Positions 13,482 through 47,553 of a stretch of 64,000 nucleotides of DNA are shown here, piece after piece. Where the stretch lies: IMG/VR virus record IMGVR_UViG_3300027736_001324, positions 186,001 through 250,000 of that record. One strand, written 5' to 3'. A program made the position numbers and the translations under genes. The notes beneath the pieces were generated by a model. The model was not told where the DNA came from. It did no database searches and saw only the letters and a program-made list of their open reading frames with translations. The first letter of the stretch is position 1; each line of letters begins with the position of its first letter.

Positions 13482-13565
13482 ATGAGTTGGTTTAGACATA
13501 AGCCCCCAAAATATCCCCCTAAACCACAGAAGCCTGATCCCAAAAATGAACCTAAAAGAACTTAA
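13482..13565 (+). CDS. 27-aa Pro/Lys-rich micro-ORF
   Basis: MSWFRHKPPKYPPKPQKPDPKNEPKRT; ATG 5 nt after TAAATA; overlaps start of 13546 ORF. Confidence 0.45.
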   Translation: MSWFRHKPPKYPPKPQKPDPKNEPKRT

Positions 13566-16500
13566 TAGTTTTAAACTAAGTGACGCAGTTACATTCCACG
13601 ACAAACTTAACCCTAAGTTATGGAATAGCACTAAGTTGCGCCCAGATGTTAGAGAACGGCTATTAATAATAGCACAAGACTTTTTACAAGAATTAGGGGT
13701 AAACGATTTAGATGTTAAAGATATAACAATATCTGGCAGTAACGCAGCGTTTAGTTACACTAAGCATAGTGATTTGGATTTACATATATTAGTAGACATG
13801 GGTAACTTACCTGTAGATGAAGTATATAGAGAATTATTTACAGCAAAGAAAACAATATATAATGACACACATGACATAAGAATTCATACTATTCCAGTAG
13901 AATTATATGTACAGGATAGTAGACAACCTGTAGTAAGTTTAGGTGAATATAGTGTAATGAACGACCAGTGGATAAGAATACCCACTAAGCGTAGAAGTGA
14001 TTTTGACCAAACCGCCACCAAAAGCAAATATGAAAAGTTATTAAGTTTAATAGAGATCGCCCTCAAGTCAAAGAAGTATAGCAAAGTAAAACATATAATA
14101 GACACAATCAAAAGATATAGACAAGCAGGTTTAGATAAAGGTGGTGAGTTTGGTCCTGAGAATTTAGCATATAAGATGTTGCGTAGTCAGGGATATATTA
14201 CGAAGTTATATGATTTAAGAGACAAGTTACATAGTGAGAAGTTATCGTTTGAGACTATGTATCAGAATATAGATGAGAATGAAGAAACAAATCATTGGTA
14301 CGATGCTGGCGTGAAGGATGCTACTCGTGGTGCTAGACCTAATCCACGCACATATTTGCCAACACTTAAAGACAAGCAAGCAAAGCATCCAGAAGAAGTA
14401 TATTTTTATATGAATGGGTATAAAAGTGTTAAGCAAGGTGTGGCGGAAGGCTCCGAGAACAATAACCCAATAGCAAATAAAATATTCTTTGCTCGTAGTA
14501 ATAAAACACCCAAAGGATGGAGTTATGACCATGTGGGGTTTATAACTCAAGATGGAAAACAAATTCAAATGAGTGGGCATAAAGGCAATGATGTATATGT
14601 CACTAACGATGTGACTGATGATCCGGAGTTTCCCAAACAAAATATCAAAATTGTATCATTATCAAAACCAGTATCGGTTCCTACAACTAACTCAGTAGAA
14701 GCAGAAAATTGCGGAACATTTGTGGCAAATGTATTACGAGCCAATGGTATAAAAGATTTTGATACACAAAAACTATATAGTGTGTTCAAAAAGCCTCAAG
14801 AGCAAGGTGTGGCGGAAGATAAAGAAAATAACAATTCAAGATTAGATGAAATTTTATATAAGTTATGTAATATTGTTAAAAAAGAAATAAAAGAAAAGAC
14901 AGGGGAACACGCTGTTGCTGCTTGTATTATTGATCCTGATAACAGAATAGTAGCAAAAACAAGTAAAGACAAACACAGTAGATGGATTCATGCTGAACAC
15001 AATGCCATTGATACATATGAAAAAAAGTATGGTGAAGTACCAGAAGGCAGTATTATAGTAACTACATTAAGCCCCTGCAATGAATATGATGATAGAACCT
15101 CCGATGAAAGATTTGGTGAAAGTTGTACAGATTACATAAACAGCAAAGGCATTAAAAAAGTCTATTGTGGATATATGGATCCTACACAAGATAATTATAA
15201 CAGAGAATTTAATGTCATAGAAACTAGTGACACCGACCTTCGTAGGCAATGTAAACAGTTTGCTGATACTTTTTTGAAGAAAAATATAGATGAAGCGTTT
15301 GATACTCCACTTCCAATAACATGGGAGAAAGGTATGCATGGTGATATTGATGCACTTGCTAAATTACCCGATGGATCAAATTTAAGCATTATGTTTAATA
15401 AACAAGATAATATTAAACCTGATGACAAGACATGGATGGTTGAATTTTATAGAAACAACAGTCAAGAAGTAACAGGTGAGGGTGACGCACAAAAAGTATT
15501 TTCTACTGTGCTAGTTGCTATTCAACAATTCATTAAAAAATACAAACCACTAAAAATCTATTTCTCAGCAAGCAAAGAGATGGATCCGACTATAAATTAC
15601 GGCCCAGATGATGTTGTGCCTAATCCTGAAAGCCGTGCTAAGTTATATGATAGAATGGTACTGCGTTATGCTAAATCTTGGGGATATAAGTTTTTCCGTG
15701 CTGATAACGGTTCTTCTGTTATATATCAATTGTCAAGAATACCAAAACAAACGGCTGTGGGTGAAGATTACACCATGCAATTTGCTGCTGAAAAAACTCC
15801 ACCAGTAAGTCCCTATGCCGGCGTTAAAGATAATCAATATCGTGGTGGAATAAGTGAAGCCTCTGGTAAAAAAATCAGTTTCAAAGTACAAAAAGGCAAT
15901 GGAAAATTCTCTACCACTTTAACTGTTAACAATACACCAGCTGGAATATATCAATATGACAGTAACACTGGGCGTAGCATTGCTGAAGTTTATCCAGAAT
16001 TCAAAGGAAAAGGACTAGGTAAATTATTAGTTTTACATGCTATCTACACCGCAGCAAAATTAGGATTAGATTTCCAAGAAGATGAATCAAGAACCAGTGC
16101 TTATGATAATGTGTTAGATAGTTTAAGCAGCAACGGTTATATTGTAGATGATGATGGATATTGGTATGTTACAGGTGACGGGGAGCAATATCTAAAACAA
16201 GCATTGAACGAAGCAAGTGGGTATATCCCAAGCGAAAAAACTCCTGCAATAAATCCATACGGCGGTCTTAAAGATAACCAATTTCGTGGTGGGATAAGTG
16301 AAGCAGTTTCTCCTAAATATGTAACTAGAGTTGATATGACACCCATTAAAGATTTTGAATCTGGTATGAAAACATATTATGGAACAGATGATTGGCATGA
16401 AAGCGGGTTAGAAAAGAAAGATAACTTCACACAAGAAATGAAGGGTTTATATGCAGGTGAACCACATCGTACAGCATTATATGCTAGTGGCAATGCAAGT

Positions 16501-17001
16501 AAAACTAGATTCTTAGAATTGAATGATCCTAAAACAGGTCAACCTGTCGTATATTTTGATAAGAAAGATATCCCTAGAATTCGCAACACAAAGACATATG
16601 TTAGTGTGTTTGATGCTAGTAGATTTAAAAAGTTACCAACAGGGGAATACTTTAGTGAGAACCCTGGTAAACCATTGAAACAAGAAGAAATAACCGATCC
16701 TTTCAAGTATATGACGAACAATGGTTGGGTAGTAAGAGTAACTGATGATATTCAAAAAGAATTCAAAAAGGCACAACAACTACATAAAGCAGGCAAGATA
16801 GACCATTATGGTGGTGAAAACTTGACGGAAGCAAGTGGGTATATCCCAAGCGAAAAACAAAAGAATGATCCTAGATATAGCACCGCACTAACAATAGATG
16901 TACACCCAGATTCTATAAAAAAGAACGCAAAAGCCTTCTATTGGAACACCAGTAGAGCAGGAATCCCCCCAACTGCTAAAGCAAACGGCAAAATCTATTA
17001 A
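13546..17001 (+). CDS. multi-module polyprotein: Pol-beta nucleotidyltransferase, permuted NlpC/P60-like, Zn deaminase, GNAT and unknown modules
   Basis: GSNA..DLDLH..VELYVQD; DHVGF..NCGTFV; HAE..PC..C; VYPEFKGKGLG; modules joined at xxE and QGVAE repeats. Confidence 0.8.
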   Translation: MNLKELNSFKLSDAVTFHDKLNPKLWNSTKLRPDVRERLLIIAQDFLQELGVNDLDVKDITISGSNAAFSYTKHSDLDLHILVDMGNLPVDEVYRELFTAKKTIYNDTHDIRIHTIPVELYVQDSRQPVVSLGEYSVMNDQWIRIPTKRRSDFDQTATKSKYEKLLSLIEIALKSKKYSKVKHIIDTIKRYRQAGLDKGGEFGPENLAYKMLRSQGYITKLYDLRDKLHSEKLSFETMYQNIDENEETNHWYDAGVKDATRGARPNPRTYLPTLKDKQAKHPEEVYFYMNGYKSVKQGVAEGSENNNPIANKIFFARSNKTPKGWSYDHVGFITQDGKQIQMSGHKGNDVYVTNDVTDDPEFPKQNIKIVSLSKPVSVPTTNSVEAENCGTFVANVLRANGIKDFDTQKLYSVFKKPQEQGVAEDKENNNSRLDEILYKLCNIVKKEIKEKTGEHAVAACIIDPDNRIVAKTSKDKHSRWIHAEHNAIDTYEKKYGEVPEGSIIVTTLSPCNEYDDRTSDERFGESCTDYINSKGIKKVYCGYMDPTQDNYNREFNVIETSDTDLRRQCKQFADTFLKKNIDEAFDTPLPITWEKGMHGDIDALAKLPDGSNLSIMFNKQDNIKPDDKTWMVEFYRNNSQEVTGEGDAQKVFSTVLVAIQQFIKKYKPLKIYFSASKEMDPTINYGPDDVVPNPESRAKLYDRMVLRYAKSWGYKFFRADNGSSVIYQLSRIPKQTAVGEDYTMQFAAEKTPPVSPYAGVKDNQYRGGISEASGKKISFKVQKGNGKFSTTLTVNNTPAGIYQYDSNTGRSIAEVYPEFKGKGLGKLLVLHAIYTAAKLGLDFQEDESRTSAYDNVLDSLSSNGYIVDDDGYWYVTGDGEQYLKQALNEASGYIPSEKTPAINPYGGLKDNQFRGGISEAVSPKYVTRVDMTPIKDFESGMKTYYGTDDWHESGLEKKDNFTQEMKGLYAGEPHRTALYASGNASKTRFLELNDPKTGQPVVYFDKKDIPRIRNTKTYVSVFDASRFKKLPTGEYFSENPGKPLKQEEITDPFKYMTNNGWVVRVTDDIQKEFKKAQQLHKAGKIDHYGGENLTEASGYIPSEKQKNDPRYSTALTIDVHPDSIKKNAKAFYWNTSRAGIPPTAKANGKIY
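14434..14451 (+). repeat. QGVAEG junction repeat copy 1
   Basis: CAAGGTGTGGCGGAAGGC. Confidence 0.95.
14803..14820 (+). repeat. QGVAE junction repeat copy 2
   Basis: CAAGGTGTGGCGGAAGAT. Confidence 0.95.
15790..16304 (+). repeat. 71-bp imperfect direct repeat flanking GNAT module
   Basis: 15790-15860 vs 16234-16304 (EKTPxxxPYxGxKDNQxRGGISEA). Confidence 0.9.
16210..16857 (+). repeat. 30-bp perfect direct repeat
   Basis: GAAGCAAGTGGGTATATCCCAAGCGAAAAA (EASGYIPSEK) at 16210-16239 and 16828-16857. Confidence 0.95.
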
Positions 17002-17053: not shown

Positions 17054-18616
17054 ATGAGATTTAAGCAAATAGTAGAAAATTCAACAACAGCAGGATCAGT
17101 CGCAACCGTAGCACAGCCTATGATGACTCAAACCCGTGAAAGTGTAGATGTCAAGGGACTAAAGCCCGTAAAACAATTAATGAAGGGCACTAAAAAGAAA
17201 GGTCCCTACGCTAATAGTATTGTTGAAGGAAAAGTTAAAGAACTTATCAGCGATTTAAAAAACTTAACTTCTTATGATTTTGAAAAGAAACACAAACAAT
17301 CTAAGGCTGACGTTAGAGCCGACATGAAGAAAGTCACCGAAGATGATCTTTCAGAACAAGACTTAATCGTTATCCCAGGACAAGGTAGACTAAGAGGTAC
17401 TGGATTTACAAAGCATGACCCTGATCGTGCTGAACATGAAGGTCAAACACTAAAGAATAGTTTACACACTATCATTCGTTTAGCAACTCATTTAGACAAA
17501 GAATTAACAGTAAGAGATAACTTCCCAGAATGGGTGTCAGAGAAAGTCGGTTCAATCAAGGGTGACATGCTTTCTGTAATGAACTATATAATCAGCAGCC
17601 AAGAAATGCGACATGATCCAGATACTATAAATGAACTCAGTTCTGCTCTGTTACAAACAGCCGCACAAGCTGCTACAGACAAACGTAATCAAGCAATGGA
17701 TCCCGAGTTACATAATGCATTAGGTGGCGGCTATATGAATCCATTAGCAAAACATTATGATAATGTATCACAAAAAATGGACAATAGGGCAGCACAAGTA
17801 AAAAGAAAAGAAACGATACAAAATATCGCTTCTAAAATCGCTTCTCCGGCGGTGATGCGTAAGATGGGTATGAATGAAGGCTCACAACGAGTTGATTCAA
17901 TTGTTACTGACGCATTACGAGTAATGAAGGGTCCAGAAGTAAGTGATGCTGTACTAGCATTAAAGAGAGTATTAGGCGACAGAGCATATAATGAGCGCCG
18001 CGGCTTTTATAGTTTCTATGTTGATCAAATACATGATATGTACGGTCAGCAAGGCGTGGCGGAAGGCGAGTTAGAAGAAGATTTAAGCCGTAGAGGATTT
18101 TTAAGAGGCTTGGGCGCGGCAACGTTAGGTGCTACAGCATTAGGTGCTGCAAGTAAAGCACAGGCAAGTCAAGATTTAGGAAACGGATTTGTTTTAACCA
18201 CTGTTGACGTTTTTGGTGGAAAATTTAAAGCAGTATTAGATACACAATCTGATATACATTATTTGCCAAATCGTCACGAAGGCGGTGGCGCTATTGTTAG
18301 AAGCATGGCTCCTTTTATTATGATAAAGAACGGTCAGACAAACACTGCTATGAATGTTGGGCCAGCTGTTCAGGCTGCATTAAAGAAAGCTGGACTATTG
18401 AAAGGTGTAGAAGAAGGTGTTAAAGAAGGCAAAATTGACTTTGCTAAGAAATTACAAAAGAATGTAGATAATCATAACAAAGCTGTAGTACAAACTAAAA
18501 AAGCTGTAGGTAGCAGAATTTCTGACATTGGCGCCGGCGGCAAAGAATACAATGTAAAGACTGATGCTGCATGGGATGCTGCTAAGAAAAAAGTTAGTGA
18601 AGGTTTAAGGAAATAA
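17054..18616 (+). CDS. multi-module putative internal head protein with internal Tat-signal module
   Basis: MRFKQIVE start, xxE-delimited modules, QGVAEG then SRRGFLRGLGAA...AQA. Confidence 0.7.
   Translation: MRFKQIVENSTTAGSVATVAQPMMTQTRESVDVKGLKPVKQLMKGTKKKGPYANSIVEGKVKELISDLKNLTSYDFEKKHKQSKADVRADMKKVTEDDLSEQDLIVIPGQGRLRGTGFTKHDPDRAEHEGQTLKNSLHTIIRLATHLDKELTVRDNFPEWVSEKVGSIKGDMLSVMNYIISSQEMRHDPDTINELSSALLQTAAQAATDKRNQAMDPELHNALGGGYMNPLAKHYDNVSQKMDNRAAQVKRKETIQNIASKIASPAVMRKMGMNEGSQRVDSIVTDALRVMKGPEVSDAVLALKRVLGDRAYNERRGFYSFYVDQIHDMYGQQGVAEGELEEDLSRRGFLRGLGAATLGATALGAASKAQASQDLGNGFVLTTVDVFGGKFKAVLDTQSDIHYLPNRHEGGGAIVRSMAPFIMIKNGQTNTAMNVGPAVQAALKKAGLLKGVEEGVKEGKIDFAKKLQKNVDNHNKAVVQTKKAVGSRISDIGAGGKEYNVKTDAAWDAAKKKVSEGLRK
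18050..18067 (+). repeat. QGVAEG junction repeat copy 3
   Basis: CAAGGCGTGGCGGAAGGC. Confidence 0.95.
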
Positions 18617-21295: not shown

Positions 21296-21736
21296 ATGTT
21301 AACAGAAGATTTAAAAGTGTTATTGGCAAGTGTTAACTCATTATCCATCAAAGCACAAAACTTTCATTGGAATGTAGAGGGAGATAACTTCCCTCAATAT
21401 CACGAATTCTTTGGCAACTTCTATGAAGAAATATACAGTTCAGTAGATAAAATTGCTGAATACATTCGTACATTAGACAGTTATAGTCCTGGCAGCTTAA
21501 CACGCTATGCTGAATTAACTATCATTCAAGATCAACTTAAGATTCCACGTGCTGAATTAATGTTTGCTGAATTGTATGAAGATAATGCTAGAATGATTGA
21601 TTTGCTTAATCATTGCTTTGCTTCTGCTACACAAGAAAATAAACAAGGTATCGCTAACTTTATTGCTGAAAGGTTAGATGCTCACGAAAAACATCAATGG
21701 ATGGTTCGTAGTGTTCTAAAGAAAGCCCGTGCATAA
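21296..21736 (+). CDS. dps: Dps/ferritin-like protein
   Basis: HWNVEG..F...H..F...Y, DKIAEYIR, HEKHQWM. Confidence 0.9.
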   Translation: MLTEDLKVLLASVNSLSIKAQNFHWNVEGDNFPQYHEFFGNFYEEIYSSVDKIAEYIRTLDSYSPGSLTRYAELTIIQDQLKIPRAELMFAELYEDNARMIDLLNHCFASATQENKQGIANFIAERLDAHEKHQWMVRSVLKKARA

Positions 21737-22290
21737 TGAGAGCAAGAGAGTTTTTATCTGAGTCCTATCGCTCGGGTATAAATGAAGAACTCAGGGTCGA
21801 TGTGCCTAACGAAGAATGGTTACAAGACGCAATTGACTATGCTAAAAGTAAAAGTCCCGATCGCAATGGTCTACCTTACATGGGAAAGACCACTGCTACA
21901 GTTAGGAACGTTGTGGTTCCGGTCAGCATATTAAGACGGATACCAGGCATGCGTCAAGAGCAATCAAAGGTAAGACACCACGATCTTGCTGCTATTAGAA
22001 AAATTATGCACACTACAGGTAAACTGCCATTACACGGACATACTGGACAAGAATATAAACCTTTTATTAATGTAGCATATGATGGTAGTGCTTGGGTCAA
22101 TGAAGGTAATCATAGGATCATGGCTGCGGCCGAACTTGGTTGGGAGTCATTGCCAGTGGAAATTTCATACTTTGACGGCGGTGAAAGAATCAAGTCAGGT
22201 CCAATGTATCCGGGTAAGATTGGGCTTGCAGAAGCAATGGATCAAGGAACTAGATGGACCGGTGATGAACCATATAGACAAACGGATTAA
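21736..22290 (+). CDS. ParB/Srx-like domain protein with capsid-targeting-like N-terminus
   Basis: EGNHRIMAAAELGWESLPV; starts MRAREFLSE. Confidence 0.7.
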   Translation: MRAREFLSESYRSGINEELRVDVPNEEWLQDAIDYAKSKSPDRNGLPYMGKTTATVRNVVVPVSILRRIPGMRQEQSKVRHHDLAAIRKIMHTTGKLPLHGHTGQEYKPFINVAYDGSAWVNEGNHRIMAAAELGWESLPVEISYFDGGERIKSGPMYPGKIGLAEAMDQGTRWTGDEPYRQTD

Positions 22291-25220: not shown

Positions 25221-27922
25221 GTTACGTGGATGCGGTTCATTCTAGGGATGACGATAGAATTTTTGTAGTTGAACGAGACCAGAACGGAAAGCGTCAATAC
25301 AAAGAATATCCCACAAACTATGTACTCTACTATCCCGATCATAAGGGAAAGTATCGCAGTATATACGGTGACCCTGTAAATCGTTTCAGTACACGCAAAC
25401 GACAAGAGTTTGAAAAAGAACGCAGAATTCATTCAGGTAAGAAATTATTTGAAAGCGATGTGCCAGTAGTGTTTCGCTGCCTTAGTGAAAACTATCTTAA
25501 GGCAGACGTTCCTAAACTACATACATGCTTCTTTGACATTGAGGTAGACTTTGATCCTGAGAAGGGTTTCAGTCCTACAACTGATCCATTCAATCCAGTT
25601 ACTGCTATCTCATTGTATTTAGATTGGCAAGATACATTGGTTACATTGGTCATTGCTCCCAAGCATATGTCACCAGAGACAGCACAGGAAATATGTAATG
25701 AGTTTAATAATTGTATGCTTTTCACTAATGAAAAGGATATGTTTGATGTTTTCTTTCAACTCATTGAAGATGCTGATGTAATGACTGGCTGGAATTCTGA
25801 AGGATACGACATACCTTACATGGTTAATCGTGTCACAAGAGTAATGAGTAAGGATGACACACGCAAGTTTTGCTTGATGGGTCAACTTCCTAAGCCAAGA
25901 GAGTACGAAAGATTTGGCAAAAGTGAAACTACATACGACTTAGTAGGTCGTATTCACATGGACTATTTGCAACTCTACAAGAAATACAACTATGAATCAC
26001 GACATTCATATAAGTTAGATGCTATTGGTGAGATGGAAGTAGGTGAGAACAAAACTCAATATGAAGGTACACTTGATCAGTTGTATAACAAAGACTTTAA
26101 AAAGTTTATTGAATACAATAGACAAGATACCGTGCTGTTAGTGAAGATCCACAACAAACTCAAATTCTTAGAACTTGCTAATCAATTGGCGCATGAGAAC
26201 ACAGTACTGCTTCCAACAGTAATGGGTTCTGTAGCAATGATTGAAATGGCAATTTTTAATGAAGCCCACGAACGTGGATTAGTAGTGCCAGACAAAAAAA
26301 GAAGGAATGAAAATGCAGAAGAAACAACGCCAGCAGCAGGTGCCTTCGTTGCTACGCCGAAAAGAGGTATGCACGAATACGTCGGAGCAGTTGACATTAA
26401 CTCGCTCTATCCCTCGGTTATTCGTAGCCTCAACATGGCAGGAGAAACCATTATTGGTCAAGTCCGTCAGACATTAACTGACAAATATATGCTTGACAAA
26501 GGCAAGCAACTTGCTAGCCTTAAGAAGCGTTTCAAAGAAGGCGACGATGACGTTACTGGTGCTATTCTATGGGAAAACTTGTTTGGTGTATTAGAATACA
26601 CATCAATTATGAATCAAGAACGTGGCACAATTCTTACTATAGATTACGAAGATGGTCGTAGTGAGGAATATAGTGCCGCTGAAATATGGAAGATGATCTT
26701 TGATAGCAATCGCCCATGGATGCTCTCTGCTAATGGTACTATCTTTACTTACGAAAAAGAGGGCGTAGTTCCAGGACTATTGTCTCGCTGGTACTCAGAT
26801 CGTAAAGTAATGCAGAAGAAACTTAAAGAATCTACTACTGATGAAGATAGAGACTACTGGGATAAGCGTCAACTTGTTCGTAAGATTTTGTTGAACTCGG
26901 CGTATGGCGCACTATTGAACGAACATTGTAGATTCTATGACAAACGTATCGGTCAAAGTGTTACACTAAGTGGTCGTCAGATTGTTAAACATATGATGAG
27001 TACCATCAATGAAACAGTTACTGGTGATTATAACCATGAAGGCCCTGCAATTGTGTATGGTGATACTGACTCCTGTTACTTTACCGCGTATCCCATTCTC
27101 AATTCGCAAATAGCAAACGGTGATATTAAATGGGATAAAGAAAACTGTATCACATTGTATGATGGTATTGCTGACCAAGCAAACGAATCATTCCCTGCAT
27201 TCATGGAAAAAGCATTTCATGCTCCAAGAAAGAATGGCGCAATCATTAAAGCTGGTCGTGAATTGATCGGTGATCGTGCTATCTTTATCACAAAGAAACG
27301 CTATGCTATCAATATCTTTGATAAAGAGGGTAAGCGTAAAGATACAAACGGTAAAAACGGTGATATCAAAGCAATGGGTCTTGACTTGAAACGTGCTGAT
27401 ACTCCTAAATACATTCAAGAATTCTTAATGGATGTACTTACTAAGGTCCTCGCTGGTGAGCAACGTGATAAAGTTATTGAAATGGTTAAAGAATTCAAAA
27501 CTAAACTATCTGAACAAGATAGTTGGACAAAGGGTAGCCCAAAGAGTGTTAATAACTTAACTAAGCACACTATTGAATTTGAAAAGACTGGTAAGTGTGG
27601 TGTGGGTCATGCAAGAGCAGCAATTAACTGGAACTATCTACGCAGAGTATACGGTGACAACTATAGCCAAAAGATTATAGATGGCATGAAGATTGTGGTG
27701 TGTAAACTCAAAGATAACGCATTGGGTTTCACTAGTATTGCATATCCAGTAGATGAATTGAGATTGCCAACATGGTTCAAAGAATTACCATTTGATGATT
27801 TACTAATGGAATCAACATTGGTGGATGAAAAGATTGACAACTTACTTGGTGTATTAGATTGGGATATCAGAAGCAATACAGATGTTAACTCAATGTTTGA
27901 TGAACTATTCACATTCGGTTAA
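25217..27922 (+). CDS. family B DNA polymerase (gp43-like)
   Basis: Exo FFDIEVD, GWNSEGYD, YNRQD; pol DINSLYPS, KILLNSAYG, YGDTDS, KKRY. Confidence 0.97.
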   Translation: MSYVDAVHSRDDDRIFVVERDQNGKRQYKEYPTNYVLYYPDHKGKYRSIYGDPVNRFSTRKRQEFEKERRIHSGKKLFESDVPVVFRCLSENYLKADVPKLHTCFFDIEVDFDPEKGFSPTTDPFNPVTAISLYLDWQDTLVTLVIAPKHMSPETAQEICNEFNNCMLFTNEKDMFDVFFQLIEDADVMTGWNSEGYDIPYMVNRVTRVMSKDDTRKFCLMGQLPKPREYERFGKSETTYDLVGRIHMDYLQLYKKYNYESRHSYKLDAIGEMEVGENKTQYEGTLDQLYNKDFKKFIEYNRQDTVLLVKIHNKLKFLELANQLAHENTVLLPTVMGSVAMIEMAIFNEAHERGLVVPDKKRRNENAEETTPAAGAFVATPKRGMHEYVGAVDINSLYPSVIRSLNMAGETIIGQVRQTLTDKYMLDKGKQLASLKKRFKEGDDDVTGAILWENLFGVLEYTSIMNQERGTILTIDYEDGRSEEYSAAEIWKMIFDSNRPWMLSANGTIFTYEKEGVVPGLLSRWYSDRKVMQKKLKESTTDEDRDYWDKRQLVRKILLNSAYGALLNEHCRFYDKRIGQSVTLSGRQIVKHMMSTINETVTGDYNHEGPAIVYGDTDSCYFTAYPILNSQIANGDIKWDKENCITLYDGIADQANESFPAFMEKAFHAPRKNGAIIKAGRELIGDRAIFITKKRYAINIFDKEGKRKDTNGKNGDIKAMGLDLKRADTPKYIQEFLMDVLTKVLAGEQRDKVIEMVKEFKTKLSEQDSWTKGSPKSVNNLTKHTIEFEKTGKCGVGHARAAINWNYLRRVYGDNYSQKIIDGMKIVVCKLKDNALGFTSIAYPVDELRLPTWFKELPFDDLLMESTLVDEKIDNLLGVLDWDIRSNTDVNSMFDELFTFG

Positions 27923-41271: not shown

Positions 41272-42089
41272 AAAAAGTATTAATAACAGGTAACAGTGGT
41301 TACATCGGTAGTCATCTTAGTAAGATGCTACGCACAGATTATCAAATATATGGATTGGATATTAATCCATCACAATACTCCGTTACCGATCATTATCAAC
41401 TCAATATCAATAAGGTGTTTAATATTGATATGGAATTTGACGCAGTAATTCATTTAGCAGCATTAGTTAATGTTAGTGAAAGTGAAAGAATGCCCATTCA
41501 ATATTACATCACTAACTTAAATGGTACAATGAATGTTATCAATAAAGTAAAGACAAAGAACTTTATCTTTGCTAGCACTGGTGCTGCACAAGATTGTGAA
41601 AGTGCATATGGTATCAGTAAACGTGCTGCTGAGGATGTGGTGCGTGAGTATTGTACAGTACACAATCCCAAAGATTACACTATCTTTAGATTCTATAACG
41701 TAATCGGTAGTGATGGGTTTGCGCCAACTAATCCAGACGGATTGATGTATAACCTGATGAAGGCTAAAGAGAGAGGCGAGTTTACTATCTACGGTACTGA
41801 CTATGGTTCAAGTGACGGTACTTGTGTGCGTGATTACGTTCATGTTAATGAGATATGTGACGCATTATCTAGTGCTATTGAAAAGCCAAGCAATCAGATA
41901 GAATGCTTGGGGCATGGAGTTGGACATTCAGTTAGAGATATTGTTAATCTATATAAAAAGGTTAACAACGTTGAATTTCTAGTAAAGCACGGACCAAGAA
42001 GAAAGGGTGACTTAGCAGTATCTGTATTAGATAATGTGTCACCCTATATGAAAGAGTTATACTCTTTGGAAGAACTACTTAAGGTCTAA
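41268..42089 (+). CDS. NAD-dependent epimerase/dehydratase (GalE-like)
   Basis: ITGNSGYIGSH, HLAA, YGISK (YxxxK), FRFYNV, RDYVHV. Confidence 0.92.
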   Translation: MKKVLITGNSGYIGSHLSKMLRTDYQIYGLDINPSQYSVTDHYQLNINKVFNIDMEFDAVIHLAALVNVSESERMPIQYYITNLNGTMNVINKVKTKNFIFASTGAAQDCESAYGISKRAAEDVVREYCTVHNPKDYTIFRFYNVIGSDGFAPTNPDGLMYNLMKAKERGEFTIYGTDYGSSDGTCVRDYVHVNEICDALSSAIEKPSNQIECLGHGVGHSVRDIVNLYKKVNNVEFLVKHGPRRKGDLAVSVLDNVSPYMKELYSLEELLKV

Positions 42090-42461
42090 AAACTTTATTT
42101 GGTTTGTTGAAAACACAACATACCAAACATCATCTCCCTCATCGTGTTCAGCAATGATACTATCATATCCGTCTGCTATTAATTCTTCACGTAGTTCTAA
42201 ATAATCTTCTTTCTCTAGTCCTACTAACTCATCCATTGTTGCTTCATATGTCTTGTTCATGGTCAATGACGCAGATATGATATATTTTCCGTATAGTTTT
42301 GCTTCACGAATAGAAGTAGTAAAAAAATGTCCTAGTACAGCATTTGGATCTCCTGTACTAGTTCCTAGCGTAGCATTATCAAATGACGAGAATTTATTGT
42401 TAGTACCGTGATAGGCAACAACACCCGAACTACTTTCAGCAATAAATTCTCTTGCTCTCAT
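42075..42461 (-). CDS. ADP-ribosyltransferase (ART-PolyVal-like) with capsid-targeting-like N-terminus
   Basis: MRAREFIAE; YHGT, GHFFT, AKLYG, GYDSI, YVVF..NQIK. Confidence 0.8.
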   Translation of the reverse strand: MRAREFIAESSSGVVAYHGTNNKFSSFDNATLGTSTGDPNAVLGHFFTTSIREAKLYGKYIISASLTMNKTYEATMDELVGLEKEDYLELREELIADGYDSIIAEHDEGDDVWYVVFSTNQIKFLDLK

Positions 42462-42462
42462 T

Positions 42463-43971
42463 TTAGTGTCTTAACAATAGTGTACTTAATACACCAGGAT
42501 CGTTAGCACTAACATCACCTTCGCCCGGAGCAACAATAACATTGTACTTCATTCCAGTTGGGATTGAATTTCTCTTAGCCATATATTCAGTATAACTTAA
42601 AATACTTGAAGCACTGATTCCATATTCTGTAGCAATACGTTGTTTCATTTCTTTAAGTGCGGCTTCATCAGCAGGTTGCCATGCTCCGTCATCAGTTTTC
42701 TTCAAGTTACCCTTCTCATCCTTAGCTAACAAGTCATAGAATAGTTTCTCTGGAACAATACGACTATTCTTTGTTGTATCTAATTTAGGGTCTTGCGCCT
42801 TTATTTTCTTCTCTTGCTCAGTGTTAGCACCTTCGCTCCAATTGATAATAAAGTTGTCTGGTTTCTTAGCTAATGCTGCTCCAGCCATCTTAGTGTAAGC
42901 ATAGAACTTAACATCAGGGTGTTTAGCAGCCATCTTTAATGCCATGTCTAAATATTCTGGACTAAAGAAGTCACCGGCATCATGCCAACGAACTGTTGTT
43001 TGCCAACCATCAGGGAATTTCTTATCACCCTTTGCTCCTGCACTTGCTTCTTTTGATATCTCACTACTTAATTGATTAAAGAATCCATCAGGATCATTCA
43101 ACAGATATGTTAATATACGACCATCACTTTGCCATGCTGCTTTAAACTGAATCTTACCGCCCTTCATAGCAAAGCATTCTACTTTACATGAACCTGCACC
43201 CGGGCAAGTATTAACAATGATTAATTTATTGGTTTGTTCATCAAGTGCAATTCCTACTAATGCCGCAAATCCAACATTGAAGAATTGTTCAAACTCTCCG
43301 TTACTATGCTTCATCTTTTCATTTTGCTTTAATAATGATTTAGGACGAATTGCTAATGTTTGTTTAACTGCATCTTCATCATATGTTTTACCATCCGGAC
43401 TCATGTAAGTAACTACGCTACTACGATGGATGTAGGGCATTTTGTATTTGTCACCTTTGGTCTTGCCAGTAGTATACTTTTCGTTACCTTTTTTATCTAT
43501 TTTAACATTACCGCTTTTATCTAAATCAGGAGTACCAACGATACGCTTCATGTAATCTTGAAATTCTTGGCTATCCAAATCACGGGTTTGTGCTGGTAGT
43601 TTAGTTGCTTCATCTAGCCCAGATAGACTACGAATTCTATCTAAGTGTTCCGAGCCTTCCGCCACACCTTTGCGATAATCTGGAAATCCAAACTTGCGAT
43701 AGTATGCTAATGCGTGACCAAACATCTTTTTGTATTCTTCAGTACCCTTTTTGTAACCTTTTGTAGCCAACTCATTTTCAATATGACGAACCATTGGCAT
43801 CTCTGCTTTTAGTAATTCTGGAGCACCTTCCGCCACACCTTGTTCTGATTCTTCATCAGGTTTTGAATCACCTGCACTAGCAACAAATTGCTGAGGTGTC
43901 ATAATCTTTATGCCACTAGGGGCTCCTGGCATCTTTGGCTCTGCGCCCTCTAATAGTTCTTTAAAGTTCAT
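42463..43971 (-). CDS. modular protein with C-terminal GP88-like domain
   Basis: MNFKELLE, two GVAEG junctions, CPGAGSCKVECFA, VRWHDAGDF, YAYTK. Confidence 0.72.
   Translation of the reverse strand: MNFKELLEGAEPKMPGAPSGIKIMTPQQFVASAGDSKPDEESEQGVAEGAPELLKAEMPMVRHIENELATKGYKKGTEEYKKMFGHALAYYRKFGFPDYRKGVAEGSEHLDRIRSLSGLDEATKLPAQTRDLDSQEFQDYMKRIVGTPDLDKSGNVKIDKKGNEKYTTGKTKGDKYKMPYIHRSSVVTYMSPDGKTYDEDAVKQTLAIRPKSLLKQNEKMKHSNGEFEQFFNVGFAALVGIALDEQTNKLIIVNTCPGAGSCKVECFAMKGGKIQFKAAWQSDGRILTYLLNDPDGFFNQLSSEISKEASAGAKGDKKFPDGWQTTVRWHDAGDFFSPEYLDMALKMAAKHPDVKFYAYTKMAGAALAKKPDNFIINWSEGANTEQEKKIKAQDPKLDTTKNSRIVPEKLFYDLLAKDEKGNLKKTDDGAWQPADEAALKEMKQRIATEYGISASSILSYTEYMAKRNSIPTGMKYNVIVAPGEGDVSANDPGVLSTLLLRH
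43654..43842 (-). repeat. GVAEG junction repeats copies 4-5
   Basis: 43654-43671 (AAAGGTGTGGCGGAAGGC) and 43825-43842 (CAAGGTGTGGCGGAAGGT) on minus strand. Confidence 0.95.
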
Positions 43972-46448
43972 TTCTTATTGTTCCTAATGTATTGTTCAGC
44001 AAGCATTACTAATTCATGTAGTTCTTCAATGCTTTCGCAATGCCATCTACGCAAACTTTTATTTATATTGCTATTTGGATCGTGTGCTGTTTTTGCACCA
44101 GTACGATGTTTCTTCATTCCACGCATTCTAGCACAGAATGATTTACGACGGGCAGCGGCTTTGCTACCTTTTTTAAGTTTGCTTGGTTTAGTTGTTACTG
44201 CTGTTTGAATCTTGCTGCCTGGATGACTACGGCGATAACTGGCTACACTCTTTTTACTCATCCCACCTGCACGTTTATTATTGTGCTTTGACCAATTCTC
44301 GCCCTCATCAACTTCTTTCTTTGCCATGCCGATACCATCACAAGCACCGCATTTATACTTTTTAGCGCCCGGTACGTCATTAGCAGGAAGAATTTTTCCG
44401 TCAGGTGCTTTCCATAAAGTACCACGACCGTTACATCTTTTACAACTAGTATTAGGGTTCTTTACAGTGGCACCTGGCATGTAGTCACTCTTGCTGAAAC
44501 CGCCTGGCAAGCCTTCCGCCACACCTTGCTGACCCGGCACTGTATCAACAATGTTTATCATTTTATCAGGAACTATTTGTACAGGAACATTGCCGTTGTA
44601 TCCGGCGGCTTGGTATGCGATAAATCTATGATTCCCATCTATTACAAAAAGTTTACCCTTGTTATTCCAAACAACTAACGGACCTAATTTCCCATTTTGT
44701 TTTAGTTGTGGTAAAAGATGGTTATTGACCCATTGAGCAACCTTTGGATCCTTCATTGACTTACCATTTTCCCACATTTGTAATTTATTAAAAGGTGCCT
44801 CAGTTACTGGCAAACTTTTCTTTATCCTGTCATCAACAGTAGCACCTTTATAAGCAGGATTTGTATAGATAGTTACTAGTTGCTGTTCCAAGCCTTCCGC
44901 TACACCTTGCTGTTGTTCTGCCTTTACAAATTGATTGGGTCTTGGCATATCTAACCTGCGTGGATCATTCATTATGGCAGGATCTTGCATTAATTTGCTT
45001 TTAGGATTAATCCAGAATCCAACCATTGTTCCTTTTAAGGGTAATGAACCTTTTGGAACAACTACTGCTTCTTCAAATTCACCACCTGCTTTGGCAGTAG
45101 GTTCAGCATATTTTGCTTTGCCTTTTGCGTTAGTTCTTGCCATTGGGTCTGTGTTCTGTGACCGTGCTTCACCGTCTTTTTTTAGATACGGGTTAAATGC
45201 TAGACCTTTGATATTTGTACTTTGACTTGTACCTAGTGTTTTGAAATTGCTTTCGACTGCATTACGATCTAAAACTAGTATTGCATCTCTACCAATGCCA
45301 GCCATTTGATTGCTTGCATTTGATCCACTGGCATAGCCCCAATCTCTGGTCACGCTTACTGTAGGCAGTTTAGTCTGAGCCGAGGTTGCTGCCTGCGGAC
45401 TAGTTGCTGATCGGATACTACCGGACGATAGCATTCCTTTAAGACCGTTTGCATCCGTAGCATGATAAAGATAGTTTCCGCCTATACCTTCATTTAGCCC
45501 TTCCGCTACACCTTGCTTGTCAATACTTCCCCGTATACCGCATTTAGCACAATGATATTGTGTTAGCGTTGGGTGTTCTTTTTTCTTTACAGGACCATGG
45601 CAATGTGGGCAGGTACCTGTGGCCATTGCCTTGACTTCTTTACTCATATCTTCTTTGGAGCCTTCCGCCACACCTTTTGATGAAGCAGTTGGAGATTGCA
45701 GTGCCCTAGTTTTAACTCCAGGCATGCCACCTAATGTCGCTAATTTTTTAACCCAGCCTTCAGCGTCAGTATCATTAAGAGATGTAACTACAGTGCCATC
45801 GGGGTCAATAGAATCTATACCAGTAAGTTTATCGCTAGCATATCCTGTATTATCAAAATAATGTCCAGGTACTGTACCAACTTTATTAGAACGATCTAAG
45901 CGAGTTTTATACTCAGCATCCCCTTTTTGTTTGTGTACCTCTAAACCTTTAGAAATTGCTGCACGAACTTGTTGTTGTTGTGTGGTTTCAGTAGAGCCTT
46001 CCGCCACACCTTGTTCTTCAATATTAGGGTTATTGATTTGTTCTGCTACACTATTCAATTTGTCATTGCTAACTGTAACAAAACTATACATCCAACCATC
46101 TAAACTAACACCCTTATCTAATTGATTCTTAATATGTATAGCATTTTTAATAATTTCACGAATCTCGCCTTGAGCCATTCCATCAATTTGCTCATCTTCC
46201 ATAGCATAACCTTCGGTTTTGGGCTTCTTCCCAGCCTTTTTCATGGCAATGGCAATTGCGGCCTGTCGTTTTGGGTTAGCCGCTTCATCTGTTGCTGACT
46301 TTTTTAATGCATCCGCTGTTGGAGCACCTTTACTTCCGGGCTTACGCATATGTTCACCGGAACCATTCTTGATTCGGTCACGCTTGGCATGTATGTTTGC
46401 CCATAACCCAGGCTTTTTGTTTTCGGATATAATTTCACTAAATCTCAT
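43968..46448 (-). CDS. multi-module polyprotein: Zn ribbon, ART-like, ParB-like, CxxCxGxG and basic modules
   Basis: MRFSEIISE; five GVAEG junctions; CPHC..CAKC; LYHAT..SVTR..EEAV; IDGNHR; CKRCNGRG..CGACDGIG; RRKSFCARM. Confidence 0.8.
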   Translation of the reverse strand: MRFSEIISENKKPGLWANIHAKRDRIKNGSGEHMRKPGSKGAPTADALKKSATDEAANPKRQAAIAIAMKKAGKKPKTEGYAMEDEQIDGMAQGEIREIIKNAIHIKNQLDKGVSLDGWMYSFVTVSNDKLNSVAEQINNPNIEEQGVAEGSTETTQQQQVRAAISKGLEVHKQKGDAEYKTRLDRSNKVGTVPGHYFDNTGYASDKLTGIDSIDPDGTVVTSLNDTDAEGWVKKLATLGGMPGVKTRALQSPTASSKGVAEGSKEDMSKEVKAMATGTCPHCHGPVKKKEHPTLTQYHCAKCGIRGSIDKQGVAEGLNEGIGGNYLYHATDANGLKGMLSSGSIRSATSPQAATSAQTKLPTVSVTRDWGYASGSNASNQMAGIGRDAILVLDRNAVESNFKTLGTSQSTNIKGLAFNPYLKKDGEARSQNTDPMARTNAKGKAKYAEPTAKAGGEFEEAVVVPKGSLPLKGTMVGFWINPKSKLMQDPAIMNDPRRLDMPRPNQFVKAEQQQGVAEGLEQQLVTIYTNPAYKGATVDDRIKKSLPVTEAPFNKLQMWENGKSMKDPKVAQWVNNHLLPQLKQNGKLGPLVVWNNKGKLFVIDGNHRFIAYQAAGYNGNVPVQIVPDKMINIVDTVPGQQGVAEGLPGGFSKSDYMPGATVKNPNTSCKRCNGRGTLWKAPDGKILPANDVPGAKKYKCGACDGIGMAKKEVDEGENWSKHNNKRAGGMSKKSVASYRRSHPGSKIQTAVTTKPSKLKKGSKAAARRKSFCARMRGMKKHRTGAKTAHDPNSNINKSLRRWHCESIEELHELVMLAEQYIRNNKK
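44511..46013 (-). repeat. GVAEG junction repeats copies 6-10
   Basis: 44511-44528, 44892-44909, 45498-45515, 45660-45677, 45996-46013. Confidence 0.95.
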
Positions 46449-46497: not shown

Positions 46498-47553
46498 ATG
46501 TATTATTTATCACTTTGGACTTTTATCTTGACAAATCAATCTATCAAACGTATCGGTTTCGCTTGTAAGTTTAGTGAACTAAACAGTAAGGGTGAAATCT
46601 GTTCTATCAAAGAACTAAACACAGGCGGCACAACTCGTGCCTGGGTCAATAGACAAACTCAAAGTGTAGCGGAAGAAAAGGTGCTAGATGTATCAAAACA
46701 AAACATTCTACATACTCACAATCTAGTTAAAAAAGTGTCATCACTGGAACCCGCATTGCGTATGGTTCGTCTTACATCGGATATGTTGCCTTTCTATACA
46801 ATGGATGGCTGGCAAGAGTTTTGGCAAGATAAATCAATGCAGGATAATCTAGCACGATGGTTTGCACCCATCGGTGAAACTGCACGGGCTAATGATGTTC
46901 GTCTTAGCTTTCACCCTGACCAATTTGTAGTTTTAGCGAGTGACCGTGAAGAAGTAGTAAATAAGAGTATAGAAGAATTTGAATATCATTGTGACATGGT
47001 TCGTTGGATGGGCTATGGCAAGACATTTCAAGACTTCAAAGTTAATGTACACATCAGTGGTCGTAAAGGTCCACAGGGCATTCGTGATGTATACAATCGT
47101 TTGTCACCCGAAGCCCGCAACACACTTACACTAGAGAATGAGGAATACACACATGGACTTACAGACTGCTTATCATTATCTGACCTCGTACCTACGGTCC
47201 TGGACATACATCACCACTGGATTAGGGAAGGTGAATATATTCAACCTACTGATGACAGGGTTAAGAGGGTTATTGATAGTTGGCGTGGCGTGCGCCCTAC
47301 TATGCATTACAGTGTTAGCCGCGAAGATGTACTCACAGGTCATTCCACTACACAATTACCCGATCATGGTGCGTTGATTGCAGAAGGACACAGTAAACAG
47401 AAACTCAGGGCACATAGCGACCAATATTGGAACGATGCTGTGAACGATTGGGCATTGACATTTGTTGATAACTTTGATACCATGTGTGAATCAAAATGGA
47501 AAAATCTTGCCAGCTTTAAATTATTTGAAAGATACAAAAATGGGATTATTTGA
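46498..47553 (+). CDS. uvsE: UV-damage endonuclease
   Basis: RIGFACK, MVRLTSD, RLSFHPDQF, NVHISG, LTLENEE, VLDIHHH, PTMHYS, RAHSD; true start may be slightly downstream. Confidence 0.92.
   Translation: MYYLSLWTFILTNQSIKRIGFACKFSELNSKGEICSIKELNTGGTTRAWVNRQTQSVAEEKVLDVSKQNILHTHNLVKKVSSLEPALRMVRLTSDMLPFYTMDGWQEFWQDKSMQDNLARWFAPIGETARANDVRLSFHPDQFVVLASDREEVVNKSIEEFEYHCDMVRWMGYGKTFQDFKVNVHISGRKGPQGIRDVYNRLSPEARNTLTLENEEYTHGLTDCLSLSDLVPTVLDIHHHWIREGEYIQPTDDRVKRVIDSWRGVRPTMHYSVSREDVLTGHSTTQLPDHGALIAEGHSKQKLRAHSDQYWNDAVNDWALTFVDNFDTMCESKWKNLASFKLFERYKNGII

Follow-up and report, generated by a model that had tools for sequence, protein, structure and literature searches.

The window analysed here, a stretch of 64,000 nucleotides (nt) covering positions 186001-250000 of the 263.7-kb virus record IMGVR_UViG_3300027736_001324 (estimated completeness 69%), carries on its minus strand an intact open reading frame (ORF) of 826 amino acids (aa) at 43968-46448, with an ATG start and an unbroken frame. 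Its product is a chain of independently folding modules, comprising basic peptides, a helical module, a module of unknown fold, a zinc ribbon, an ADP-ribosyltransferase (ART) fold, a ParB/sulfiredoxin fold, a second zinc module and a DUF6321 domain, most of which are parted by a short repeated junction centred on the pentapeptide GVAEG. The shuffling of modules at these junctions among related contigs is the most directly shown of all results of the sequence comparison. The chain is probably a capsid-targeted polyprotein: the prohead protease of the phage would cut it behind the Glu of every junction, and the pieces would be ejected into the host.

GVAEG occurs five times in the ORF (aa 147, 259, 313, 515 and 642, at window positions 45996-46010, 45660-45674, 45498-45512, 44892-44906 and 44511-44525, respectively) and is preceded by Q or, in one copy, by K; the general form of the junction is [Q/K/E]GVAE-[G/D/E/A]. 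At the DNA level its core is AAGGTGTRGCGGAAGG, with GTA for GTG in two copies and GGG for GGC in one. An earlier, sequence-only reading of the window had described the ORF exactly as found here, with module coordinates that agree within a few bases, and had counted five perfect junctions. As pentapeptides they are indeed perfect, but the three codon changes and the replacement of Q by K show that they are not fully so as DNA, and a sixth, decayed junction, KEVDE-G, lies between the second zinc module and DUF6321. Its counterpart in the 529-aa metagenomic relative P0020 reads KDVAEG, and many BLAST alignments of the DUF6321 module begin at aa 713-717. In the 264-kb genome as a whole the motif is found 12 times, only in five large ORFs and in frame in every copy. 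The neighbouring gene at 42463-43971 contains two copies, the genes at 13546-17001 and 17054-18616 together contain three, and one junction is located in an ORF at genome position 120931, outside the window.

Module exchange at the junctions

The fold of aa 263-716 was modelled with AlphaFold from a colinear alignment of 31 sequences. The model consists of domains with a predicted local distance difference test score (pLDDT) of 80-96, and between them the score falls to less than 50 at all three junctions covered (residues 49-60, 252-259 and 379-407 of the model); its overall predicted template-modelling score of 0.46 is as expected for independent domains. Domain boundaries that fall away from the repeats would speak against a cassette architecture; at the three junctions tested, the predicted boundaries fall on the repeats.

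In a BLAST comparison with the junction-bearing ORFs of related contigs, every module turned up in other proteins, where both the order and the adjoining modules differ. The ART-like module, for example, occupies aa 648-859 of an ORF in contig L105, where junctions are located at positions 654 and 856. In an all-against-all comparison, a junction is found no more than 8 aa away from 22.6% of the internal alignment ends, as compared to 7.4% for randomly placed junctions, with a maximum of 10.1% in 200 trials. P0020 illustrates the same behaviour in a single pair of proteins: it lacks the first peptide, the helical module, the module of unknown fold and the zinc ribbon, while identity with the 826-aa chain amounts to 67%, 97%, 23% (replaced) and 93% in the modules that are left, shifting at the junctions. 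The NPKRQAAIAIAMKKAGKKPK stretch of the second basic peptide (aa 55-77) is identical in P0020, with GVAEG directly after it.

The module at aa 318-514 had been called ART-like from the sequence. It has no match in Pfam even at an E-value of 10 and none in PHROGs even at an E-value of 1, yet its AlphaFold model (mean pLDDT 73) resembles structures of the ART superfamily. The model aligns with Tpt1/KptA over 90 residues (Z 9.2, root-mean-square deviation 2.6 Å) and with DarT over 140 residues (Z 8.2); almost all matches listed belong to this superfamily, with cholera-type toxins and PARPs following Tpt1 and DarT, while the Foldseek E-value is weak (0.014). The assignment of an ART fold to the predicted structure is sound. 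In an alignment of 23 sequences, His 13 (YLYH), Arg 52 (TRDW) and Glu 141/143/144 (GGEFEE) are invariant, and this His/Arg/Glu set is a candidate for the catalytic motif of the superfamily (H-Y-E or R-S-E). BLASTP shows no similarity between the module and the neighbouring ART-PolyVal protein. With 102 relatives in varied contexts among 1.84 billion cluster representatives, the module constitutes a new family of about 100 clusters, the closest structural relatives of which modify DNA or RNA.

The following module was correctly recognised as ParB/sulfiredoxin-like. It matches phrog_1033 (E 1e-6), and Foldseek aligns it with sulfiredoxin 6ky4 (E 3.7e-5, TM-score by target 0.70) and with ParB N-domains (E 2.4e-4), while Pfam ParB_N stays at 15.2 bits, under its cut-off of 26.3. 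It also resembles a stand-alone protein of 184 aa encoded in the window (21736-22290), which has its own leader, MRAREFLSE, and a GLAE near its end.

Overall, nearly every module assigned in the earlier reading was confirmed. Residues 10-77 are composed of two basic peptide modules, one matching phrog_16028 and the other being the QAAIAIAMKK peptide. The resemblance of the helical module to a part of the 520-aa protein encoded at 17054-18616 had also been noticed before; BLASTP of the N-terminal part against that protein returned nothing significant, but a converged local jackhmmer search connects the two with an E-value of 1.8e-18 and finds about 40 further copies in related contigs. Pfam, PHROGs and the ESM Atlas returned no informative match for aa 152-258. 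The zinc ribbon, with its four cysteines, is backed by weak Pfam and PHROG zinc-ribbon matches and is predicted to fold as such in the model of aa 263-716. The second zinc module has two CxxCxGxG motifs; the match behind its description as DnaJ-type stays under the Pfam cut-off. The basic C-terminal module is Pfam DUF6321 (37.9 bits, cut-off 28.5).

Leaders, head protease and candidate cleavage

In phage T4, internal proteins carry a capsid-targeting sequence (CTS) of about 10 residues, MKTYQEFIAE, which is removed by the prohead protease gp21 (PMC8442874). This enzyme cuts after the Glu of L/I-x-E (PMC9026906), and Alt is cut by it at both ends (PMC9026906, PMC8442874). The 826-aa chain opens with MRFSEIISE, which resembles the T4 CTS as judged by eye and by regular expression. 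Six ORFs of the genome, this one included, begin with M[RK]xxE[FI][ILV]xE; the five other leaders are MRAREFIAE of the ART-PolyVal gene, MKTNEFLTE of an 891-aa LysM protein, MRAREFLSE, MRAKEFITE and MRANEFIVE. Such leaders are enriched in the junction-bearing ORFs of the clade (21/95 versus 41/692, P 2e-6).

A gp21-type prohead protease is encoded in the genome (positions 25576-26211 of the genome, minus strand; Pfam Peptidase_S77, PF03420; 99 bits, cut-off 27), as is a Gp23-type major capsid protein (329 bits), and both belong to a T4-like head module, which also comprises portal, small proteins and scaffold. The capsid protein contains two candidate sites of similar form to the junction, VILE-N and LLAE-S, in its propeptide region, where T4 gp23 is cut. 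By capsid protein, the closest cultured relatives (62-66% identity) are the jumbo phages Vibrio phage 2.275.O, Pseudomonas phage PA5oct, Escherichia phage A4 (Asteriusvirus) and Sinorhizobium phage Phosso. More than 120 IMG/VR contigs contain the exact junction 18-mer. Those of middle size have an estimated completeness of only 9-18%, and the two near-complete junction-bearing genomes tested (338 and 374 kb) both encode a gp21-type protease; the junction thus marks an uncultured T4-like clade with genomes of about 340-375 kb. Judged by these features, the source genome is a fragment of such a jumbo phage. Four other clade members that were checked contain 2-5 junctions per genome, versus 12 here. 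A megablast search with 10 kb around the ORF found no match in 50,697 phage records, and in a tblastn search with the whole 826-aa protein only the N-terminal peptide and DUF6321 modules were matched, in cyanophages and pelagiphages.

Several features connect the junction itself with cleavage. The start of the ART-like module is visible in 68 relatives: in 23 of these, GVAE is found within 14 aa upstream, in 18 the module directly follows an N-terminal phi-x-E leader, and most of the remaining 25 have a diverged site that keeps the Glu, followed by G, D or S. By this comparison of sequences, junction and N-terminal leader are interchangeable ahead of the module. In addition, QGVAE-G closes some short leaders. 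Five polyproteins, including the 520-aa protein of the window, contain Tat signal peptides (RRGFLKG...) at internal positions between 109 and 716, placed 2-7 residues past a junction. A signal peptide functions only at a free N-terminus, and the internal signals therefore support cutting at the junction. They also suggest that, once injected, part of the cargo may be exported again into the periplasm of the host. In the 520-aa ORF the signal peptide covers aa 345-375 (window 18086-18180), and the same layout is seen in four related contigs.

The motif GATAAATA, which is also located upstream of the start codon of the 826-aa ORF, resembles the T4 late promoter. It occurs 34 times in the genome, mostly 12-35 nt upstream of a same-strand ORF, many of these very large, and also precedes ORF 27148-27375 of the head module; it is probably the late promoter of the clade. 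A scan of the block for sigma-70 promoters and terminators gave no more than is expected at random, and the region ahead of the ORF had no such promoter on the minus strand. The CTS-like leader and the late-promoter-like motif are indirect signs that the product may be packaged in the virion and injected.

In the proposed mechanism, the gene would be expressed late, and the MRFSEIISE leader, like the T4 CTS, would direct its protein to the core of the prohead. A gp21-type protease would then cut after the Glu of V-A-E at every junction. The freed pieces would remain in the head and be ejected with the DNA, which the basic peptides may accompany, and the ART-like enzyme and the ParB-like domain would act on nucleic acids or proteins of the host or of competitors. 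Finally, the DNA of the junction would be conserved as a short in-frame homology patch for the swapping of modules, which is the least certain step. The sequence-only reading had called the chain a polyprotein, a term that implies cleavage: the modular chain is borne out, and cleavage is favoured by a number of sequence features that are independent of one another. Neither the link to T4, through the capsid-targeting leader and the gp21 protease, nor the conservation of the junction at the nucleotide level had a part in that reading.

Two other modes of cleavage were dropped: a self-cleaving or intein-like junction, as no such domain is found and the motif has only six residues, and a 3C-like cut between Q and G, as many copies have K or E in place of Q.

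Junction DNA and competing explanations

The junction is conserved beyond what its amino acids require. GCG accounts for 6.5% of the Ala codons of the genome and GTG for 10% of its Val codons, but all 12 junctions use GCG and have GTG or GTA for Val, while other V-A-E tripeptides of the genome mostly use common codons. The probability of the junction codons being drawn from genome usage is about 1e-21. In 157 junctions of related contigs, picked independently of the search pattern, the codons are GGT (94%), GTG (81%), GCG (78%) and GAA (86%), and information content drops to zero immediately beyond (C/A/G)AA GGT GTG GCG GAA G, i.e., about 16 nt. Whether the GC content of the contigs is low, middle or high, GTG accounts for about 80% and GCG for about 77% of sites (backgrounds 12-33% and 7-10%, respectively), and the bias also shows when four other genomes are searched in a codon-blind manner. 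Of 259 copies of the core, 258 lie in frame on the sense strand of long ORFs. A phage tRNA does not account for the rare codons, as the record contains no tRNA gene. A full-text literature search for GVAEG found no paper mentioning the motif in phages.

The most economical and most likely reading of this conservation is that the junction serves as an identity patch for in-frame exchange of modules. A more far-reaching version, in which each junction is both a prohead-protease cut site and a nucleotide-conserved crossover site, a coding counterpart of PeSLs or integron attC through which effector domains are plugged in and out of capsid-targeted polyproteins, possibly by a dedicated sequence-specific enzyme, is put forward tentatively and is rather doubtful.

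Several observations weigh against cleavage by the head protease and exchange through the junction. The P3 position is Val, versus Leu/Ile in the T4 logo; the capsid and other head-module proteins that were scanned contain no GVAE; and the 826-aa gene is about 200 kb away from the head module. None of the four cultured relatives contains a junction in any codon form, which means that the junction is not a general requirement of the gp21 protease family. A patch of 16 nt is short for homologous recombination, and synonymous conservation ends sharply at the motif edges, a pattern more in keeping with a constraint on the sequence itself than with mere recent exchange.

Some of these points recur in the rival explanations. 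That the junctions are only flexible linkers between domains, and that the uncut 826-aa chain acts, perhaps packaged whole, is unlikely. The virion RNA polymerase of N4, a polyvalent protein, is packaged unprocessed (PMC5512222), and the predicted disorder of the junctions is what would be expected of any linker. However, a plain linker needs no invariant Glu, and it would neither be interchangeable with an N-terminal phi-x-E leader, nor terminate short N-terminal leaders, nor precede internal Tat signal peptides by 2-7 residues. Cutting at the junctions by a protease other than gp21, which could come from the host or could be active in the cytoplasm or following injection, so that the pieces need not be virion proteins, is very unlikely, although Iyer et al. 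propose that polyvalent proteins are processed inside the host, and both the distance of the gene from the head module and the cultured relatives, which share the protease family but not the junction, would agree with it. The T4-CTS-like leaders, the phi-A-E form of the site and the propeptide sites of the capsid protein indicate gp21 instead, and no further protease domain is found in the polyproteins scanned.

A function of the junction RNA or DNA in its own right, as a translational pause between domains, a binding site or the target of a site-specific nuclease or recombinase, would be compatible with head-protease cleavage of a capsid-targeted chain, but is quite unlikely. The sharp edges of the motif, with no information outside about 16 nt, and the choice of specific rather than any rare codons leave room for a sequence-specific role of the RNA or DNA, as does the preference for GTG and GCG over background in all GC classes, and the purine-rich GG runs (AAGG, GGAAGG) look similar to Shine-Dalgarno sequences. 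Against this, the almost invariable reading of the core as G-V-A-E means that it is never free of a coding role, an Rfam search found no family in the window, a shared RNA fold is impossible with unconserved flanks, and no candidate enzyme was identified. Finally, the repeat might be an artefact of assembly or a chimera, in favour of which nothing speaks except that the record is a metagenomic contig; this is negligible in view of the more than 120 viral contigs with the exact 18-mer and the 102 cluster representatives that contain the ART-like module in varied contexts, with the frame intact throughout.

Genomic setting and comparison with known systems

The 826-aa ORF and the two genes behind it form a minus-strand island (42075-46448) in an otherwise plus-strand region, with a GC content of 0.417 versus about 0.37 around it and a reversed GC skew. 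Coordinates of the features are given in Table 1.

Table 1. Features of the 826-aa chain, its junctions and related genes, in window coordinates.
Feature	Position	Strand	Remarks
826-aa polyprotein ORF	43968..46448	-	stop codon 43968-43970; first in the three-gene minus-strand block
GATAAATA, T4 late-promoter-like motif	46504..46511	-	63 nt upstream of the start codon
Leader MRFSEIISE, aa 1-9	46422..46448	-	CTS-like, ends in phi-x-E
Basic peptide module, aa 10-53	46290..46421	-	phrog_16028; internal or C-terminal in other polyproteins
Basic QAAIAIAMKKAGKKPK peptide module, aa 55-77	46218..46286	-	21/23 identical in P0014
Helical module, about 60 aa, aa 81-146	46011..46208	-	homologous to aa 128-182 of the 520-aa protein (17054-18616)
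Junction 1, QGVAEG, aa 146-151	45996..46013	-	
Module of unknown fold, aa 152-258	45675..45995	-	homolog in L086
Junction 2, KGVAEG, aa 258-263	45660..45677	-	
Zinc-ribbon module, aa 264-312	45513..45659	-	CxxC ... CxxC
Junction 3, QGVAEG, aa 312-317	45498..45515	-	pLDDT <50 in the model
ART-fold module, aa 318-514	44907..45497	-	YLYH, TRDW, GGEFEE invariant
Junction 4, QGVAEG, aa 514-519	44892..44909	-	pLDDT <50 in the model
ParB/sulfiredoxin-fold module, aa 520-641	44526..44891	-	DGNHR
Junction 5, QGVAEG, aa 641-646	44511..44528	-	pLDDT <50 in the model
Zinc module, aa 647-711	44316..44510	-	two CxxCxGxG motifs; unrelated zinc module in its place in P0020
Decayed sixth junction, EVDEGE, aa 712-717	44298..44315	-	DVAEG in P0020
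DUF6321 module, aa 717-826	43971..44300	-	very basic, net +21
Next gene, 502 aa	42463..43971	-	leader MNFKELLEG, junctions at aa 45 and 102, then Pfam GP88 domain
Third gene, 128 aa	42075..42461	-	leader MRAREFIAE, then Pfam ART-PolyVal domain
1151-aa polyprotein	13546..17001	+	two junctions; dCMP-deaminase-like module after the second
520-aa polyprotein	17054..18616	+	leader MRFKQIVEN, helical module, one junction, Tat signal peptide 7 residues after it

The 1151-aa polyprotein contains a second type of repeated boundary, with xEASGYIPSEK and EKTP..PY.G.KDNQ.RGGISEA present twice each, and its L-N-E and L-T-E also match the T4 cleavage rule. The 891-aa protein at 18618-21293, which starts with MKTNEFLTE, combines a threefold GGADIPGANPHQLDPSQMQ repeat with a LysM domain and low-complexity Ala/Pro/Lys tracts and may be an ejected cell-wall-binding protein. 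Among 63 junction-bearing polyproteins of related contigs (L009-L128), few modules match Pfam and most have no family; the matches include GNAT acetyltransferases, Pol-beta-type nucleotidyltransferases, the SutA RNAP-binding domain, NT5C nucleotidase, ParB and LysM.

Elsewhere in the genome, outside the window, a permuted tmRNA gene is located at 101468-101826 (Rfam beta_tmRNA, 112 bits, cut-off 84; tmRNA_permuted, 129 bits), with the tag ANDELFALAA according to ARAGORN, and the match suggests that the host may be a betaproteobacterium. Unusually for a jumbo phage, ARAGORN predicts no tRNA gene in the 264-kb record, which is about 69% complete. Genome positions 53007-72800 are taken up by one open frame of 6597 aa.

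The system shares with the T4 internal proteins (IPs) IPI-III and Alt a short leader of the form M-K/R-x-x-E-F-I-x-E, a gp21-family protease encoded in the genome, a cut site (here a candidate one) ending in Glu, an ADP-ribosyltransferase (here an ART-like module) among the cargo and a highly variable content of the arms-race type. While each of the T4 proteins is a single module, with either one cut or a cut at each end, the chain here joins as many as eight modules, with one standard internal site that is conserved as DNA too, in a clade known from sequence alone. If the proposed mechanism is true, T4 capsid targeting has been turned into a plug-and-play device, in which the flanking junctions would be enough for any small protein to enter the head, to be freed by its protease and to reach the host. 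It would then offer a simple sequence rule for recognising ejected effectors in uncultured giant phages, most of the modules recognised in this way being without a known family, and a natural design for the delivery of multiple cargo proteins in T4-type heads.

The 826-aa protein is also a polyvalent protein in the sense of Iyer, Burroughs, Anand, de Souza and Aravind (2017), as it unites disparate domains in one chain that also occur solo or in other architectures. ART, ParB-like, zinc and unknown domains are likewise joined in one phage polypeptide in polyvalent proteins, for which delivery with the DNA is predicted as well. Processing of these was proposed to occur via embedded zincin-like peptidase domains, and linkers are not mentioned (PMC5512222). 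In contrast, no peptidase domain is found here, and a uniform short junction that looks like a cut site of the prohead protease is combined with a T4-type leader. A further comparison is with head and inner-body proteins of the giant phages phiKZ, 201phi2-1 and SPN3US, which eject many head proteins with several sites per protein; their gp21-like proteases cut at S/A-x-E, i.e., after the Glu of a three-residue motif, as proposed here. However, the additional sites in these phages are mostly located in long propeptides that are discarded, while those of the present clade part folded modules and have the form of a fixed hexapeptide.

As a site of exchange, the junction has a precedent in the PeSL elements and IP loci of T4-type phages, in which recombination needs only short homology (PMC2839356). 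There (Arbiol et al. 2010; Repoila et al. 1994, as cited in PMC2839356 and PMC9026906), short conserved DNA flanks variable cargo and provides crossover points for shuffling. PeSLs are intergenic, about 100 bp in length, consist of a promoter and a stem-loop and shuffle genes, whereas the junction is about 16 nt long, lies within the frame and shuffles domains. The junction is thus linker-like but not a PeSL, with all but one of 259 copies in frame and flanks that are not conserved. If exchange occurs in this way, it would be a concrete case of what the old modular theory put forward, with the domains of phage proteins shuffled by way of a defined linker. An analogy is also offered by viral polyproteins such as those with the 3C sites of picornaviruses, where one chain gives rise to several mature products by way of a repeated short recognition site. 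Here, however, the chain belongs to a tailed double-stranded DNA phage, carries accessory cargo rather than a replication and capsid set, and differs in module content even among close relatives.

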